From contig CDRNVI010000003.1 of NCBI GenBank assembly GCA_977017575.1, positions 310,001 through 374,000 of the forward strand: a DNA stretch of 64,000 nt, written 5' to 3'. Made by a program: the position numbers and the translations under genes. Of the stretch, positions 23,879-32,509 are shown piece by piece. Source of the stretch: Paramoeba atlantica (lineage: Eukaryota > Protista > Discosea). A model generated the notes under the pieces. The model was not told the DNA's origin and did no database searches. It worked only from the letters and a program-made list of their open reading frames with translations. Position 1 is the first letter of the stretch, and each line of letters opens with the position of its first letter.

Positions 23879-24517
23879 TTAATAGATTTGGACACACCTA
23901 GGAACAGAGCCGTTAATGTCCAATCCTTTAGAGATTGTCAGTTTTTGCAGTGATTTCGGAAGAGCATCGAATGACACCTTTCCAGAGAACTGATTTCCCC
24001 GCAAACTAAGTGTCTGAAGATGTGGTGGTAAGGCGTTTAAGCAAAGAGGTCCTTCAAAATTGTTATCTCTTAATCCGAGAAAACGCAAAGATGGGGGGAG
24101 GCGCTCTGCGTCAAAAGTGCCAGAAAATGAGTTCCCAGAGAGCGCAAGCGATTGCAGCTCGTGATGTAAGGCCGCGAAGTTTACACATCCCGTTAGATAA
24201 TTATAGTGTGTTAATCCAAATTTGCTGTACACGCCAAGGTTCAATGTCGTAAACATTTCTGGGAGACAACCCCAATCAGGAATCGTACCCTTTAACTTTC
24301 GACCGAACCAAAGAATTTGCCAATCATCTGTGAATGGGTTGCGTTGAATCCCTTCCCACTGATCCGGCGAGTTGTCCTCATGCCACGATGCCGAGGGGTT
24401 CGATATGTTTTGTATAAATCGTGCAAGTCGGAATGAAGGGGGGAGTGATTGGAGACGTACTCGAGCGACTCGGGTGTTGGAGTTCGATGCGTCAACGCAA
24501 GTAATAAGCATGTTCAA
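23879..24517 (-). CDS. Short LRR protein (family member 2)
   Basis: WEGI N-cap, LP..L..L.L..N.FSG repeats. Confidence 0.85.
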   Translation of the reverse strand: MNMLITCVDASNSNTRVARVRLQSLPPSFRLARFIQNISNPSASWHEDNSPDQWEGIQRNPFTDDWQILWFGRKLKGTIPDWGCLPEMFTTLNLGVYSKFGLTHYNYLTGCVNFAALHHELQSLALSGNSFSGTFDAERLPPSLRFLGLRDNNFEGPLCLNALPPHLQTLSLRGNQFSGKVSFDALPKSLQKLTISKGLDINGSVPRCVQIY

Positions 24518-24568: not shown

Positions 24569-25830
24569 CTGTCCCCCCGTTTAAGCGCACCGGTTCTGCC
24601 CCCCACCCGTTTACGCGCACATTTTGGAAACGAAATTTCCTCGTATGTTTCTGTCAAACAGATAACATACATCTGTCAAACAGATAACTAGGGGGGGTAG
24701 GGGTGTGACAGATAACTAGGGGGGGGGTCCGACATAAAAAAAGGCAGAGCATGTAATTACAGAAACGGTATAAAATAGCATCACGCACGATCATTCGCTT
24801 GAAACACAAAAAGAAAAAATGTAAGTTTCGTTTTAAGAGTTTTTTGGAAAAAAAGTAATTTACCTATTTTTAAAAGGTGATAGATAACCAGGGGGGATCG
24901 ACGAAAAAAGGAATCGAAGCGCCAAAAAGTGACAGATAACTAGTCGACGAAAAAAGGAATCGAAGCGCCAAAAAGTGACAGATAACTAGTCGACGAAAAA
25001 AGGAATCGAAGCGCCAAAAAGTGACAGATAACTAGTGGGAGTGACGTGTGACAGATAACTAGTGGGGGTGACGTGTGACAGATAACTAGGGGGGGTACAG
25101 TAACTTATTGTGTATTTTATCTTCTATAGAAGCTTGTATATCTTAATGATAATCTTAATTATTTTCATCTTTAGTAATCTTATAATACGTATATGTAGAA
25201 TCGATTTCTCTTTTTCGTTTTTGAATAATGCCCACCCTTGATTCATGGATAACCTTTCGGCGTCCATTGCCGAGGGTTAGTGAAGTCGTTGTACGAAGTC
25301 AAAGCTCATCCAACCTAGCAGAACCCTCGCCTCCAAGGAAAATCGCCGATTCGACTACGAAGAAAACTATTCCTAAAGGTTCTGATACCCATGCCCCCAC
25401 AAAGCGAAATCGCTTGGAGATTTGCCGCTCCCCTCTAAGCGTAACTCAGCTACACAAATGTATGTCACAAATGCGGAACAACAAGATGGACGATTATGAG
25501 GACGAAAAGCAAAGGTGGGGCTCACTACCATGCTCACATAAATCGAGGGGGACGGGATAGAAAGCGGGAGCGTGCTTTTAACAGCGAGCGTCAGTTGGCC
25601 AAGGAGAAAGTGAATGACAAAATGGTAAAGACCGTGGACGGGAAATTTGCCTTCACGAAGCAGTTTGTCTTCGAGCCTATGGAGAAGCATGGCGCTCTTA
25701 AGGAATCCTTGTAGGAAAAAGCGAAGGAAGCGTAATTTGTTTTTCGGGGTGGTGGTGATAGAATGCGTCAGAGCCCCCCTTTAAGCGTACTTTTCACGAA
25801 AAGTGAGGTGCGCTTAAACGGGGGGGGGAG
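24569..25830. mobile_element. Non-autonomous TA-flanked TIR element (Tc1/pogo-like), 1262 bp
   Basis: TA|CTGTCCCCCCGTTTAAGCGCACC ... GGTGCGCTTAAACGGGGGGGGGAG|TA; an extra internal right-end-like motif GGGGGGGTACAG|TA at 25089-25102. Confidence 0.8.
24651..25095 (+). repeat. Subterminal repeats: CAGATAAC motif cluster including three exact 46-bp tandem units
   Basis: TCGACGAAAAAAGGAATCGAAGCGCCAAAAAGTGACAGATAACTAG at 24898, 24944, 24990; further CAGATAAC copies flank them. Confidence 0.9.
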
Positions 25831-26445
25831 TATTCATAACTTATAAGTATTTATTGTCGGAGCTATGAAAGTTCTAATGCAAAATTACGGTAGATTAATT
25901 GTTGACAAAGTGATGTGGCCTCCGCTTATTTTTCACCACGACAATGAGCACCGCACTCGTTCGGGGCACAAGAATCAGCGTTGCGCTGCATGACTAAGCT
26001 TCTACCTTTCTCGGTGCGATTTCCGGCGTGGTACATTTATGACTTCCCTTTTATCAAACCCCTGTAACTCTTGAGTAGGGGGAACTATCATACTTTGGCG
26101 AGTACGGTGAGTACTTAAAAAGGATGGAACATGTACGTGATCTAGAGAAAACTCGCTGTACTCGGTTTAAGTATGAAGTATAGACTGTGCTTGCGGAAAC
26201 TTCTTTTCTATAATAGAAGATTCTTATAAATAGAAGATAAGAATGCAGCGCTCTCAGCAAAGCAAATGATATTATGATAGATGGAAAAAGAATCTAAGAA
26301 TTTTCCGATAGCAACACAAAAAGAAACGAATCAAAATTATTTAAGGTACAACTTTTCAGTTCCTGTTATCGAGCGGGTAAACGTGGGTAAGGCGGGTAAA
26401 CGGGTAATTTACCCGGGTAAATACCCATTTATTCACTGGTCGAGG

Positions 26446-26525
26446 GCCGCTCCGTAACTCCGCATTACCCAGTCCCAAGCCTGGGGAAGGTCTTCGCTAA
26501 GGCCGGGGGAGGAGGGAGGAGAGGC
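26446..26525 (+). ncRNA. Twister self-cleaving ribozyme (type P1, with P5 hairpin); predicted cut between U26455 and A26456
   Basis: P1 GCC.CTCC/GGAG.GGC; UAA; P2 CTCC/GGAG; T2 GC/GC; P4 CCCAG/CTGGG closing loop TCCCAAGC; P5 GGTCTT-cgct-AAGGCC; conserved GA followed by GGG (T1 with CCC). Confidence 0.85.
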
Positions 26526-26625
26526 GTTAAGGATTTTTACTTCGAATTGGCAGACATACAGTGTAGTTCATCAACATGTGGCTGATTGGCGTCGCTCATG
26601 TTTATGTTCCGACCTGAGAAATATT

Positions 26626-27660
26626 GGATCTGTGGTACGTTAATTGGCTCTGTGTGGCCCGTTTGTTGGATCTGTGCGATCCGGTTGTTGGATCTGTGTG
26701 GTGCGTTGATTGGATCTGCGTGATTCGTTGATTGGATCTATGTGGTCCGTTGATTGGATCTGCGTGGTCCGTTTATTGGATCTGTGAGGTTGGTTGTTGG
26801 ATCTGTGTGGTCCGTTGATTGGATCTGTGTGGTCCGTTTGTTGTATCTGTGTGGTCCGTTTGTTGGATCTGTGTGGTCCGTTGATTGGATCTGTGTGATA
26901 CGTTGATTGGATCTGTGTGGTCCGTTGATTGGGTCTGTGCGGTCCGTTTGCTGGATCTGTGTGATCCGTTTGTTGGATCTGTGTGGTCCGTTGATTGGAT
27001 CTATGTGGTCCGTTTGTTGGATCTGTGCGGTCCGTTGATTGGATCTATGTGGTCCGTTGATTGGATCTGTGTGATTCGTTTGTTGGATCTGTATTGTCCG
27101 TTTATTGGATCTGTGCGGTTGGTTGTTGGATCTGTGTGGTCCGTTGATTGGATCTATGTGGTCCGTTTGTTGGATCTGTGTGGTCCGTTTATTGGATCTG
27201 TGCGGTCCGTTGATTGGATCTATGTGGTCCGTTGATTGGATCTGTGTGGTCCGTTGATTGGATCTGTGTGGTCCGTTGATTGGATCTACATGTTGTATGT
27301 GGTCCGTTTGTTGGATCTGTGTGGTCCGTTTGTTGGATCTTCGTGGTCCGTTGATTGGATCTATGTGGTCCGTTAATTGGATCTGTGTGGTCCGTTAGTT
27401 GGATCTGTATTGTCAGTTTATTGGATCTGTTCGGTTGGTTGTTGGATTTGGGTGGTCCGTTGATTGGATCTGCGTGATACGTTTATTGGATCTGTGTGGT
27501 CCGTTGATTAGACCGGTGTGGTCGTTGATTGGATCTGTGTGGTCCGTTTGTTGGATCTGTGTGGTCCGTTTATGGGGTCTATGTGATCCGTTTGTTGGAT
27601 CTGTGTAGTGGCTCATTGCAGGAGAGTGTCCGATGTGGGATCTGTGGGGTCCGTTGGATC
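26626..27660 (+). repeat. Tandem array of about 45-47 degenerate 22-nt units (consensus GATTGGATCTGTGTGGTCCGTT)
   Basis: GGATCT-like cores counted by eye; shorter GGTTGGTT variant units near 26780, 27110, 27425. Confidence 0.95.
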
Positions 27661-27699
27661 AGTGCGGACTGCAGGCTCGATCTGTATCCCCATGCTTGT

Positions 27700-27871
27700 A
27701 TGCGGAGTTACGGAGCGGCCCTCGACCAGTGAATAAATCGGTGTTTGACGGATCGGCCGTTAAACGGAGGTTTGTTGATGGTCGACGGCCGTGTAGTACG
27801 AGCGTTTGGGGTTGGTTAGGAGGTAGGCCTAGGTGGCAGCTGGGCCCAGCACTCCCCGTTCCGGCTAAAAA
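27700..27871 (+). other. Internal complementary region (ICR) of the YR retroelement
   Basis: 27700-27738 is the exact reverse complement of 26427-26465 (39/39); 27734-27871 is the reverse complement of 31802-31940 (3 substitutions, 1 indel); the two halves share TAAAT. Confidence 0.9.
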
Positions 27872-28153
27872 TATATATATATACATGTATATATATACAT
27901 GTTGTATATAGGAAGGAATTAAGTACACTATTGAGGAGGAAAGTTATCAAAATAGTACTAGTAGCAAGAGTTGGAATGCCGTGCTTCCATCTATTTAACG
28001 TAGCAAGATCTCACACGCGCTCCTACGTGATATTTGACCTAAGTTTGTTGGGACTGTTTTTAGAGATTCTCCACCTAAAGGATAGATCTAGAAATTCTGT
28101 ATCACTGTTTAGTTTTATAGCGAACTACACTCTGTATAAAATTTGTTTATTTC

Positions 28154-29119
28154 GTGCTTATGAGCTCTAAGCGAAAGCGTACTCCCGTGGAAGAACCTAG
28201 GACTACATTAGAAGGTTCTGATTCGAATGTGGTAAACACAGTTTTTCGAGAGATATCAAAAGCGATCTCCCATTCTTCTGACACGAGTCGTTGCACGCAT
28301 AAGAATGATTTATGTGGCGCGATAGTGTCTGAGGTGCATGAATGGGTTGGAACCGCGGCCATTCCAAAGGCCGAAGTTTCAGATGTATTCCGCGTGAAGC
28401 TAGAAGAAGTATTTATCAAGTGTCGTCAGGGTACCTGCGACAAGGACAATAAGGAAGCCCTGGAAAGCAGAATTAGTTTCATAAAGGGCGACGAGTATTA
28501 CATGTCAATTGTTGAGGATTTTGTCGCAGACAAAGCAGGTATGAGATTCTGGCCCTCTATGCATGCGACGGACAAAGCTAAACTTTATTCCGTCCTTGTG
28601 GAACTTGCCGTTGTTCTACAGCTGCATGCTTTACCGAAAGGGCTAAGCTTTCAATGCCCTGATGCGATGTATTACGCCACCGTAATTTCTTCGGCAGCCC
28701 GAGCGGCGTATGTGGGAAAAGAAAATTTTAAGAAAAGTACACCTTCCCCTTTAGGTGAGCGGATTCTTGCGAAAAAAGTATACGAAAAAATGGACTCAGT
28801 GGAAGAAATGTCTGCTTTCGTGAACACATTAACTGCATGCACGTATAATGTTACAAAAAGTTCTTCTAATCATTTTCGACCTCTTGGTCAGTCCTTCCGC
28901 TCTTCCCGACATTCATTTTACGGTGCAGTGTCGCCGCCAAGCTGTTCGGGATGTGGGGGTAATGGACACCAAGCTAGAGAAGGGGGAGCGTGTCCAGCTT
29001 GGCGTCCACATCTCGCAAAGTGGAAGTCTCGCTCTTGCGGTGGAAATGGGCACAAAAATATGTGGTGCCCATCGGCGAGCAGCCGTGCGACTGAGGAACC
29101 AAACAAATCACTCAACTGA
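28154..29119 (+). CDS. Gag-like protein of the YR retroelement
   Basis: 321 aa; C-terminal knuckles CSGCGGNGHQAREGGAC (CX2CX4HX7C) and degenerate SCGGNGHKNMWC. Confidence 0.7.
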   Translation: MLMSSKRKRTPVEEPRTTLEGSDSNVVNTVFREISKAISHSSDTSRCTHKNDLCGAIVSEVHEWVGTAAIPKAEVSDVFRVKLEEVFIKCRQGTCDKDNKEALESRISFIKGDEYYMSIVEDFVADKAGMRFWPSMHATDKAKLYSVLVELAVVLQLHALPKGLSFQCPDAMYYATVISSAARAAYVGKENFKKSTPSPLGERILAKKVYEKMDSVEEMSAFVNTLTACTYNVTKSSSNHFRPLGQSFRSSRHSFYGAVSPPSCSGCGGNGHQAREGGACPAWRPHLAKWKSRSCGGNGHKNMWCPSASSRATEEPNKSLN

Positions 29120-29734
29120 AAAGTACGCGCCATAAACCGTACTGAAGTGTGGAACAGGATAACGTAGTGTAGACGAAGATATCTTTTAAGACATTAACTT
29201 ACTCTGTGATGGAAGTAGCACTTTTTGCTTTCTGATACATGGGAAGGCTGTATGGAGGCGCGTAAAGGCTGTGTATGTATCTAAAACATAAATATTTTAT
29301 CTAAACGTACGTGTATGTTGTTGATTGCAACTTAGAGACAAACATTAACTAAAGATTTATTTTCTGGAATGGAAGGCTTATTAAAGCTAAGGGCGTACTT
29401 TGACATTTATAGTAATGCTCAAATGGTATCTAACTCCTTATACAGTATGATGTCATTTTATTTGTACAGTAAATAGACATTGAATGCACATTCAATGTAG
29501 TAAATAAGTATTTTACGTGGTGGACAATGTTTTGTATATTTTGTTTTCTGCTGTCTTTGGTATTTTCAATGCAGCAGTCCGTATAATAATTGAACTACCC
29601 TTAGCCTATAATTGAGCTACCGTTAGTATGATAAGTCGGAAGGACATATGGGGGTACGCAATACTCAAGGGTACGTAGTTTGAGTTGGCAGTGCGCGGTG
29701 TACCAGCGTATTGTTTAGATTTTTTTAGTCTGTT

Positions 29735-30741
29735 TTGGTTATCCTGACACGTACAGTATATTTGGTTATTAGTCAACTCAAGATAAACTTTATGTACCGA
29801 AAAAACAAGAGTCGAACAGGTTTTAAGTCGACTAATATAGTTCGGGTGACAAGTACTGAAGCGTACAGTGAATTAGTGGAAAGTTCGGTGCGATGCTCTA
29901 CATCCAGGAAATATCATTCGTGCGCAAATACATTGAGAATTTTTTTGCGCACATACCGTAACCTTCCGGATACCGCACCAGTCGATATTACAAGCTTCGA
30001 AGAAAGTGAGTTTGTAGCATTTCTAGTAAATTGGAAGCGACAAGGTTTGGCTTCGCCACGCTTGTATCATGCCGCCTTGGCTCACTTCAAGCTTCAAGCG
30101 GCTAAGCGCGAAGCTTGGCTACACACACGAGAAATTCAAAAGTTAATTAAGGGAGCCGGTGTGAATGGCGAAAGAAATGAAAAAGGCGTTCTTACATGTG
30201 AAATGCTTCGTGAATTATGTAACTATATTGAAAATAGAGTTGTTCTCCCCACAACGTGTATGAGTTGTAACAAAAAAGGGATTTGTCAGAAACAGGGTCT
30301 GCGGGATATTCTTACAACAGCAATAATGCTTTTCATTGATTGCCCTATTCGGCCTGAGAATTTGCAAAATATAAAGTGGGATCATATCCAGCTATCAGAT
30401 TCAGAACTTTACTTGCCACGCACAAAAACAAAGAACGGTGGTAGCACAATTAAGTGTGGGAGAATTGTGCTTGATCGGATGAAAAATTTGCCAAAATATG
30501 ACGAGTGTTTTGTTTTAGTAACCCGAAGTGTACACGGATGCACTTGTCCAAGGTGTTAGCAGGGGCGAAAAAGCATTTTAGCTGGCCTGAATCACTTACG
30601 GTTTCTGTACATTGCTTGCGCCACACTGGGCATAGCGCTCGAAAAAATCAGGTAAGTGATCTGATAGGAGCGTTTGTGTCTGATACTACGGTTTCGACTT
30701 TTCGGCATTATACGCGCTCTAATGCCGCCAGATTAAACTGA
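29735..30741 (+). pseudogene. Tyrosine recombinase, frameshifted near 30505-30550
   Basis: First frame has an SAM-like N-domain, PIRPENL (Arg) and PRTKTK (Lys); second frame (30505-30741) has HCLRHTG and FRHYTR (Tyr). Confidence 0.85.
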
Positions 30742-31061
30742 ACGAAAATGTAAGCTTGTAGCAGAATTTGACACACAGTATAGGAGATACATACATGTAC
30801 TATGTATGTTACTGTACTATACGTGCTATGTATGGTACACTTGTATTCGGTTTAGTGCGGCTCTGATACAACTGATAAGTATAAGAGTATTCGGAAAGTA
30901 CGTGTACAAGGATAGAACCTTCACCATGCGACTCAGTCTCGCATGAAAAGCGACACAACTGTACTTTGACATTAGTTTAGGCACTACTTTTTTAACACAA
31001 TATACAGAACCAGACTTCGCGCAGTTCCTACAACACTGCTGATTTAAACGGATGGATACTC

Positions 31062-31748
31062 ATGCTACGTAGTGCAGGTATCTATTTTAGTTCTTTACCA
31101 ACGGGGAACGGAATAAATTTGGGTGACTACGATCAAACGGCTCGAAAAGGTCAGTGGGCAATCCCGACGGACCCTCTTGAAGAATTGGTTAATGTGGGGG
31201 GCGCTAGATTGATTCTTGGTGAAACATTGGCAAATGTCCCCTTTGTAAAGAAGGCATTACATCTAATTTCTACAGCCGCTGTCCAAGGCTTAACAATGGA
31301 AGGTCAAAATCCAAGCGAGTGGAATACGGATCGCTGGAGCCGCCATATTCTTTATTTAATAAAGGTCGGGGTTTTGGAGAAATGTTGCACAGACTCAGCT
31401 TTAAGCCTTGATAAGAGTCCTATCTATGGTCGATACGCCGCCGTATTGAAAGATGAAAATAAGGCTCGGGCAATTTTTGACCTCAGATTTTTGAACAAAC
31501 ACTGCCCGGGAACGGGGATACAGTTTTCTTTAGTAAGTGCAGGAACACTGATCTCTCTTCTTCGAGAGCTCTTAGTCACAAAGTTGAGGTTGCGAATAGT
31601 ACACTGCGATATTAAGAACGCATACTACCAGTTCGCGATCGAAAATGATCTAAGACAGCAATGCTGTGTATACATGCATGATATATTTTCTTTCAGCCCT
31701 GTATACTGTTTCTTTTGCGGGATATTGTCAAGGGCCTTGACTCTGTGA
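31062..31748 (+). pseudogene. Reverse transcriptase, N-terminal half only
   Basis: KARAIFDLRFLN and IVHCDIKNAYYQ motifs; no YxDD or RNase H seen in any frame before the right terminus. Confidence 0.8.
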
Positions 31749-31801
31749 GAAGGAACACGTGTCCCCCCAATCGGATAAAGGAATCCTGCCTTATCTCTCC
31801 G

Positions 31802-31940
31802 TTTTTAGCCGGAACGGGGAGTGCTGGGCCCAGCTGCCACCTAGGCCTACCTCCCAACCAACCCCAAACGCTCGTACTACACGGCCCTCGACCAGTCAAC
31901 AAACCTCCGTTTAACGGCCGAGCCGTCAAACACCGATTTA
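31802..31940 (+). repeat. Right terminal sequence of the YR element, inverted relative to the ICR
   Basis: 139 bp, reverse complement of 27734-27871; ends in ATTTA. Confidence 0.9.
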
Positions 31941-32212
31941 CCCGGCAGGGGTATGTATAGTACGCACCAGAAAAAAAATGCTACATGTAAAGAAAAAAAC
32001 CGCCACATGAATGAGGAGAGAAAAATTGTTTTATAGATTATTTTTCCCGATACGATTTCCACGTTCGTCGGACCAGTTCGTACTTACACACTGTATATTT
32101 GAGATCGACAGCCCATAGGCACTTCAAAAGCTAAGTTTCCAGAATCCCATGGTGACAACTTTTCCTCAGTCATAAAGATAGTACAACCACCATAATTGTT
32201 TTTCACGTAGCT

Positions 32213-32509
32213 CTATTTACTGCGCGGTGAAGCAGTGCCCTGACTTACTTGCTGCCCTCTCACACACTGCTCCATTAATCCCTCTTTGAATCCCGAGAAA
32301 AATATTTTTTCATGAGATGATCCAGGCGGAACATCAGTGGGGCGTAGTAAGCGAGAACTTACTTCCGTAAACCCATCGCGCACACCTGAAGCGTGTAACC
32401 TGCGGTCATGTGCTTCGTGATCCTTCCTACAGATCATGACATCTATATCACCCTCATTTTTCGAGCTGTCCTCAGTTGTAAAGACATCATCCCACGAATA
32501 CGTAAGCAT
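32213..32509 (-). CDS. Small protein, possibly YAE1/LTO1-like
   Basis: HDRRLHASGVRDGFTE...FFSGFKEGL resembles the Yae1 N-terminal GxxxG repeat pattern. Confidence 0.4.
   Translation of the reverse strand: MLTYSWDDVFTTEDSSKNEGDIDVMICRKDHEAHDRRLHASGVRDGFTEVSSRLLRPTDVPPGSSHEKIFFSGFKEGLMEQCVRGQQVSQGTASPRSK

Follow-up and report, generated by a model that had tools for sequence, protein, structure and literature searches.

The 64,000-nt stretch of the Paramoeba atlantica assembly analysed here (the window; C3:310001-374000 in an assembly of 45.7 Mb in 248 contigs) carries a compact mobile element on its plus strand. We regard it as probable (about 0.7) that this element is a defective, VIPER-like tyrosine recombinase (YR) retrotransposon of the DIRS order that inserted at an ATTTA pentanucleotide as one unit, and that its family follows a cycle in which a twister ribozyme at the 5′ end is coupled to an internal complementary region (ICR). 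All the parts listed in the initial annotation, from the ribozyme through a hairpin array, the ICR and a gag-like, a YR and a reverse transcriptase (RT) open reading frame (ORF) to the right terminus, were found at its coordinates, in its order and on the plus strand. The initial annotation named two conditions that would refute it, divergent boundaries and inconsistent linkage of the ribozyme/array block to gag-YR-RT; both were checked, and neither overturned its reading.

Insertion at ATTTA and the mirrored termini

An unoccupied version of the insertion site is present elsewhere in the assembly. The left flank (26226-26426, plus strand) belongs to an unrelated dispersed repeat ('repeat X'), of which it forms the terminal part and into which the element inserted. 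There are about 10 copies of this left-flank repeat at 89% identity, and positions 26150-26414 recur at C30:922966-923230 with 94% identity. The right flank (31941-32220, plus strand) has its sole other copy at C30:923236-923514 (98%). Between the same flanks, the empty site (C30:923228-923244) holds one ATTTA (923231-923235). The uninterrupted 17-mer CCCATTTACCCGGCAGG, composed of the left-flank end, ATTTA and the right-flank start, has 36 exact copies in the genome. The single ATTTA of the empty site implies that the pre-insertion site had one ATTTA. Moreover, since 26432-31940 is missing from the empty site as one block, the 5.5-kb segment reaching from the ribozyme to the right terminus entered as a unit.

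Both ATTTA pentanucleotides that had been reported to flank the element (26427-26431 and 31936-31940) are present, but only one of them belongs to it. The left one is the putative target or crossover pentanucleotide, which occurs once in the empty site, once in the junction encoded by the ICR and twice around the element. Boundaries compared across the family agree, in that other copies end in ATTTA or (G)TTTA: the C37 copy starts with ATTTATTCAC and the C35 copy with (G)TTTATTCAC, the C30 copy ends in GATTTA on its right side, and the ICR of the C18 copy encodes the junction GATTTATTCA. The single ATTTA of the empty site and of the ICR-encoded junction is what a YR-mediated crossover between a circle junction and the core of the target would leave. 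As for the target repeat itself, its end reads ...ACCCATTTACCCGGCAGG, and many of the 36 copies form inverted pairs at distances of 2-3.3 kb (C71:200579/203499 and C63:158859/161772 are examples), an arrangement suggestive of an element of the terminal inverted repeat type.

The two termini of the element are mirrored inside it. The left terminus (L, 26427-26465) consists of a 29-nt leader (26427-26455) and the first 10 nt of the predicted cleaved RNA. The right terminus (R, 31802-31940) is 139 nt long, ends in ATTTA and can form a hairpin of 10-11 bp at 31908-31932. The ICR (27700-27871, plus strand) mirrors the R+L circle junction, with ATTTA present once: when reverse-complemented, it aligns over 174 nt to R (31802-31940) joined to L (26432-26465), with three mismatches and one indel. 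L is complementary to ICR positions 27700-27738 at 39 of 39 positions, R is complementary to 27734-27871, and the match between ICR and L stops 10 nt beyond the predicted ribozyme cut. The ICR sits 1.27 kb from the left end, in the 5′ leader. The earlier proposal of an ICR in the 5′ untranslated region of an element without long inverted terminal repeats (ITRs) therefore holds, as the only inverted repeat of the ends is an imperfect one of 22 nt (91%) between L and the interior of R. Split direct repeats are likewise absent from the element, and no direct repeat connects its head with its 3′ region.

Other copies of the same family (family A) show how its parts have come apart. The C35 copy (98% identity) joins 26485 directly to 27890, so that the twister's 3′ half is missing along with the array and the ICR; the copy retains L and half of the twister (58 nt of the head) and extends beyond the window copy through more of RT to where RNase H begins. 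The C30 copy is 5′-truncated and includes RNase H and R. The C37 copy is a head only, with L, a twister bearing a C-to-G change in the core, an array of 27.6 units and an ICR, and it diverges from the window at 27895. Both C35 and C37 start at the same place as L. In a more distant subfamily, located where contig C18 begins, the ICR is likewise followed by gag.

Copies such as these raise the question of whether the twister-array-ICR block is a chance neighbour of, or nested next to, an unrelated gag-YR-RT element downstream. C37 has the head block without gag-YR-RT, C35 has gag-YR-RT with only 58 nt of head, and the breaks fall at nearly the same place (27890-27895). Both breaks, which belong to independently rearranged copies, lie however in a TA-rich microsatellite immediately behind the ICR (27872-27910, plus strand), a rearrangement hotspot, and fit secondary deletions; C35 still begins with L and half of the twister. 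The empty site lacks 26432-31940 as one block, the ICR within the head block mirrors R, which lies beyond RT, and linkage of a twister to RT is seen again in many families (see below). We therefore consider independent origins of the two halves very improbable.

The copy in the window is itself damaged. The YR and RT ORFs that had been annotated are both there, but YR is frameshifted, and RT is truncated and followed by no RNase H. Five extra nt at about 30517-30522, seen when YR is compared with the C30 copy, cause the frameshift, and the RT homology ends after 31680. With both lesions the window copy is dead and cannot move on its own.

A second, GC-rich family of YR retroelements was encountered next to family A on two occasions: it adjoins the C35 copy (L031:2726-4266) and is split by the right end of the C30 copy (L032:5989-6766). 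The latter arrangement represents a nested insertion into another YR element, as in DIRS-1.

The twister ribozyme and its linkage to YR retroelements

The ribozyme (26446-26526, plus strand) is a twister of type P1 with a P5 and without a P3. Rfam twister-P1 (RF03160, clan CL00120) matches 26451-26520 with 37.5 bits (E 1.5e-5, 6.5 kb searched); at gathering thresholds, Rfam yields no match anywhere in the window. The low score is due to the missing P3 together with an 18-nt insertion in P5. The conserved core (U^AA, GC, GUCCCAAGCC, GAGGG) is intact, P1 can be extended outward to 8 bp despite one G-A mismatch, and cleavage is predicted between T26455 and A26456, 29 nt inside the element. The minimum free energy fold of the twister alone is no better than that of shuffled sequences (z +0.5), as expected for a pseudoknotted structure.

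Much stronger evidence comes from the rest of the genome, in which the Rfam model detects 47 twisters and a model built from 26 of them at least 147. These 26 fall into about nine sequence groups with flanks that cannot be aligned between groups. In their alignment, 89.8% of the cells are paired, compared with 40-52% when the partners are slid. Compensatory changes occur in 14 of the 20 pairs and affect P1, P2, P4, P5 and pseudoknot T1; for example, the T1 pair C27-G85 is replaced by A-U in six sequences. The observed covariation score was reached by none of 500 shuffles. On the strength of this covariation we take the genome twisters to be genuine, the window copy with its full core among them.

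We next asked whether twisters are linked to YR retroelements beyond family A. Linkage of a twister to RT recurs genome-wide, and in the window element the twister lies within terminal sequence that is mirrored by the ICR. Among 29 RT matches, 17 have a twister on the same strand 4.1-7.1 kb upstream, whereas three control configurations gave 0, 1 and 0; the list of twisters is a lower bound. Some families retain open RT frames, for instance at C71:72-78 kb and C12:299-305 kb. In seven families (A, A2, C, D, F, G and H), the element's own head recurs in inverted orientation 65-1364 nt downstream of the twister, and the mirrored part begins 9-25 nt upstream of the twister and extends 8-30 nt beyond the cut. 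Most families have arrays of hairpin units between the head and its inverted copy. These arrays are unrelated to each other, with units of 22, 25, 28, 63, 78 or 124 nt, and their copy number differs between copies. Family D illustrates the arrangement, with a twister, an array, an ICR and a gag homologue followed by RT 4.9 kb downstream; the family D ORF after the ICR is 26% identical to ORF1 of the window element (E 3e-9). The hairpin array between ribozyme and ICR is a conserved part of the leader. In the window it occupies 26623-27606 (plus strand; about 45 units of 22 nt, TRF score 1206). Each unit is able to form a GGAUC/GGUCC hairpin, and the folding of 110-nt array segments is far more stable than that of shuffled sequences (z -5.1 and -6.2).

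Ribozyme and array might instead be fossils, inherited from an ancestral element and carried along without any role in transposition, with nothing functional left in the window copy. That every family-A copy is broken would fit this idea, as would the twisters of family E, located in tandem gene arrays that have neither an ICR nor an RT close by. On the other hand, compensatory changes have kept the twister structure across families whose flanks cannot be aligned, and each family keeps a head/ICR pair spanning its own cut site, which is hard to explain without selection. We accordingly regard passive inheritance as improbable. The family-E twisters occur at intervals of 6.5-21 kb in two contigs (C54:594-702 kb and C99:43-78 kb); none has an ICR within 1.5 kb or an RT match in the vicinity. 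They look like relics that were copied together with the genes of a tandem array.

The coding region of the element follows the order gag-like, YR, RT. ORF1 (28154-29119, plus strand) is gag-like by position and encodes one CCHC-like knuckle, CX2CX4HX7C; no Pfam family matched it. The frameshift-split YR (29735-30738, plus strand; 29735-30559, then 30502-30738) has the RxxxxL, K, HxxR and Y motifs and a weak match to Phage_integrase. The N-terminal part of RT lies in an ORF at 30996-31745 (plus strand) and was delimited, with homology up to 31680, by comparison with the C35 and C30 copies, the RT fragments being unrecognised by Pfam. About 300 nt of ORF1 (28252-28568) recur with 85-92% identity as a solitary fragment of 300-390 bp at no fewer than 12 loci (L006, L008-L019). 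These fragments share about 78 nt of extra upstream sequence, and contig depth is raised there too. They may have arisen from gag as a small repeat; alternatively, gag may have captured such a repeat in frame.

A proposed cycle and the points that weigh against it

The arrangement of cut site, leader and ICR leads to a model of the family's cycle, in which cleavage, circle formation and ICR-templated end repair are steps that we infer. Transcription would enter the element from upstream. The twister would then cut off the 29-nt leader and thereby set the 5′ end of the genomic RNA. Minus-strand cDNA made from this RNA would carry, at the position of the ICR, a sense copy of R+L. The 3′ end of the cDNA, complementary to the first 10 nt of the RNA, could anneal at this copy and prime re-synthesis of the leader, and extension would proceed over the lost 29 nt until the annealed 5′ end is reached. 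Joining of the ends would yield a circle with an R-ATTTA-L junction, and the recombinase would cross the ATTTA of the circle with that of the target, leaving ATTTA on both sides. In essence, such end repair corresponds to the Cappello model for DIRS-1, with a ribozyme in place of the promoter.

The twister could also do a different job, releasing unit-length RNA from read-through, tandem or rolling-circle transcripts, either for retrozyme-like circularisation or for translation, while the ICR would serve cyclisation or packaging of the RNA. Within the RNA, the ICR can indeed base-pair both to the 139-nt 3′ end and to the initial 10 nt of the cleaved molecule, the hairpin arrays resemble protein-binding or packaging sites, and in Perere-3 reporters twister cleavage enables downstream translation (PMC8501958). 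Yet the ICR includes 29 nt that are gone from the cleaved RNA, and so makes sense only as a template. Under trans-splicing, a matter of established kinetoplastid biology, 5′-OH RNA without a spliced leader should be translated poorly. Furthermore, the ICR of DIRS-1 is essential for retrotransposition and is needed after cDNA synthesis (PMC7192593). On balance, this other role for the twister seems unlikely.

Several observations count against the cycle proposed above and against the interpretation of the window copy on which it is based. The flanking ATTTA could equally be a 5-bp target-site duplication. The Rfam score of the twister is below the gathering threshold of 67.2, and its P1 has a G-A mismatch next to the loop. 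Twelve of the 29 RT matches are without a listed twister, and the assembly holds no intact family-A copy. The plus-strand copy is antisense to the host transcription unit, so that read-through at this locus would give no sense RNA. Finally, the public runs with the locus comprise DNA contigs only. No element starts, ends or circle junctions occur in these contigs; the lone joint classed as 'opposite strands' is the ICR/R inverted repeat, and the contigs have loose ends at 31937-31940.

Relatives, host context and known systems

To look for related elements, the RT fragment was searched against 1.84 billion protein representatives, which gave 81 relatives. No named or NCBI-sourced protein was present among 10 sampled of the 81, nor in word-index searches with RT and YR; the RT and YR relatives that were looked up come from ENA, JGI or Logan assemblies. 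For a full-length relative, the nearest Atlas clusters are Euglenozoan. The window YR is homologous to metagenomic YR ORFs (E 1e-12 to 3e-23), and the C-terminus of ORF1 resembles the CCHC ORF of a metagenomic relative. A caveat is that these metagenomic relatives have the order YR, CCHC-knuckle ORF, RT, so gag-YR-RT is not fixed in the clade.

The metagenomic contigs L072-L075 and L080-L085 end before the element head. One that includes it, L076 (ENA ERZ27280257 k141_2665780, 6.6 kb), carries upstream of YR (81-1080) a head of 113 nt, a 24-nt array and the head again in inverted orientation. Positions 160-238 match the hepatitis delta virus (HDV)-like model RF02682 with 26.9 bits (E 0.013), below gathering; P1 and P2 (7 bp each), P3 and a GGCGAA J4/2 are readable in the sequence of this candidate ribozyme. 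If real, it would be a different ribozyme class at the same head position, with the inverted copy again spanning the cut site, which suggests that ribozyme classes are interchangeable parts of the design.

Two further features of metagenomic contigs were recorded. An inverted, near-complete twister-like sequence lies upstream of YR in L078:183-243 (ENA ERZ27280234 k141_1102935); its first 13 nt are identical to those of the window twister, and it is possibly part of an ICR. A 50-nt array upstream of the same YR protein has opposite orientations in L080:78-377 and L081:1-245, reflecting either an inversion that took place between head and ICR or a choice made during assembly.

The surroundings of the element bear on its host. 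Outside the element, all 20 window ORFs of at least 250 aa are on the minus strand, in agreement with the initial description of the element as antisense to the host genes. Pfam scans of five of these 20 identify them as ordinary eukaryotic genes without introns: an acyl-CoA synthetase-like gene, an AAA ATPase, Sec1, a Cid1-type nucleotidyl transferase and listerin. Such a one-strand run of genes is the polycistronic layout known from kinetoplastids. We describe the host of the element as a kinetoplastid-like protist; the 3′ pattern of the trypanosomatid spliced leader was not found in the genome. Also in this neighbourhood, the gene-free stretch upstream of the element contains a motif that ends in GTGACAGATAACTAG and is present in both tandem and dispersed copies (24630-25110), and an LRR/FNIP ORF fragment lies on the minus strand (23879-24517).

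Among described elements, DIRS-1 and its relatives are similar in several respects. They are YR retroelements whose ICR mirrors the joined termini, the DIRS-1 transcript is expected to be without the extreme left end, which is restored through the ICR, and junction nucleotides shared with the target flank the insertion, with (tri)nucleotides proposed for this role at new insertions of DIRS elements (PMC7192593). DIRS-1 also inserts into other repeats. In contrast to DIRS1-like elements, the window element has no long ITRs, and its ICR is in the 5′ leader rather than beside the right end, where that of DIRS-1 is located (PMC7192593). The order gag, RT/RNase H (with or without a methyltransferase), YR is replaced by gag, YR, RT, the shared core is a pentanucleotide instead of a trinucleotide, and a ribozyme would set the 5′ end of the RNA, which in DIRS-1 starts from an ITR promoter.

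The VIPER gene order claimed for the element was borne out. Together with VIPER and TATE it has in common the succession of gag-like ORF, YR and RT/RNase H, the CCHC box of gag, a kinetoplastid-like host and the expectation of no target-site duplication (PMC6681497, PMC12278014). As described, however, VIPER and TATE have split direct repeats (A1 ... B1-A2-B2) and neither an ICR nor a ribozyme (PMC6681497, PMC12278014), and the metagenomic relatives found here depart from their gene order. The affinity is based on gene order and host lineage and not on a tree. Ngaro/PAT-like elements are defined by split direct repeats and the order gag, RT/RNase H, YR, neither of which is seen in the window element.

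Ribozymes at the 5′ end are known from elements that have no long terminal repeats (non-LTR elements). In Perere-3 of Schistosoma mansoni, twister variants that are co-transcribed with upstream sequence process the 5′ end, and cleavage defines the element RNA (PMC8501958). Perere-3, however, is a non-LTR element using target-primed reverse transcription, and the 5′ strand of its P1 is supplied by the target-site duplication, whereas in the window element that strand and the leader belong to the element and are stored in the ICR. HDV-like ribozymes of R2, RTE and L1Tc similarly shorten a read-through transcript so that it begins at the 5′ end of the element; a kinetoplastid example is L1Tc, according to a passage in PMC12278014 citing Sanchez-Luque 2011. 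These ribozymes, again of non-LTR elements, cut at their own first base, so that the element loses nothing. A survey of twisters (PMC11662667) mentions neither kinetoplastids nor recombinases. In the library searched by full text, no paper connects ribozymes to DIRS, Ngaro or VIPER elements, in line with the initial impression that no YR element with such a combination has been described.

More broadly, the data may point to a Euglenozoan clade of YR retroelements with a ribozyme-dependent cycle, in which a 5′ ribozyme, of the twister type in this genome and apparently HDV-like in a metagenomic relative, would set the end of the genomic RNA, an obligatory ICR template in the leader would rebuild the cut-off terminus together with its recombination site, and hairpin arrays of variable sequence would act as packaging or timing modules. 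We put this generalization forward tentatively, at slightly worse than even odds. YR retroelements are the least understood retrotransposons, and how the ends of their RNA are defined and repaired is largely a model; canonical twisters, for their part, are still without a settled biological role. The element offers exact sequence predictions on these matters, namely the position of the cut, the leader of 29 nt, the overlap of 10 nt that would serve as primer, and ATTTA as the site of crossover. If true, the cycle would be the first ribozyme-dependent mechanism of YR retrotransposition and would give canonical twisters a natural role in biology. It would, moreover, account for the way in which elements without promoters acquire defined RNA ends in genomes that are transcribed as long polycistrons.

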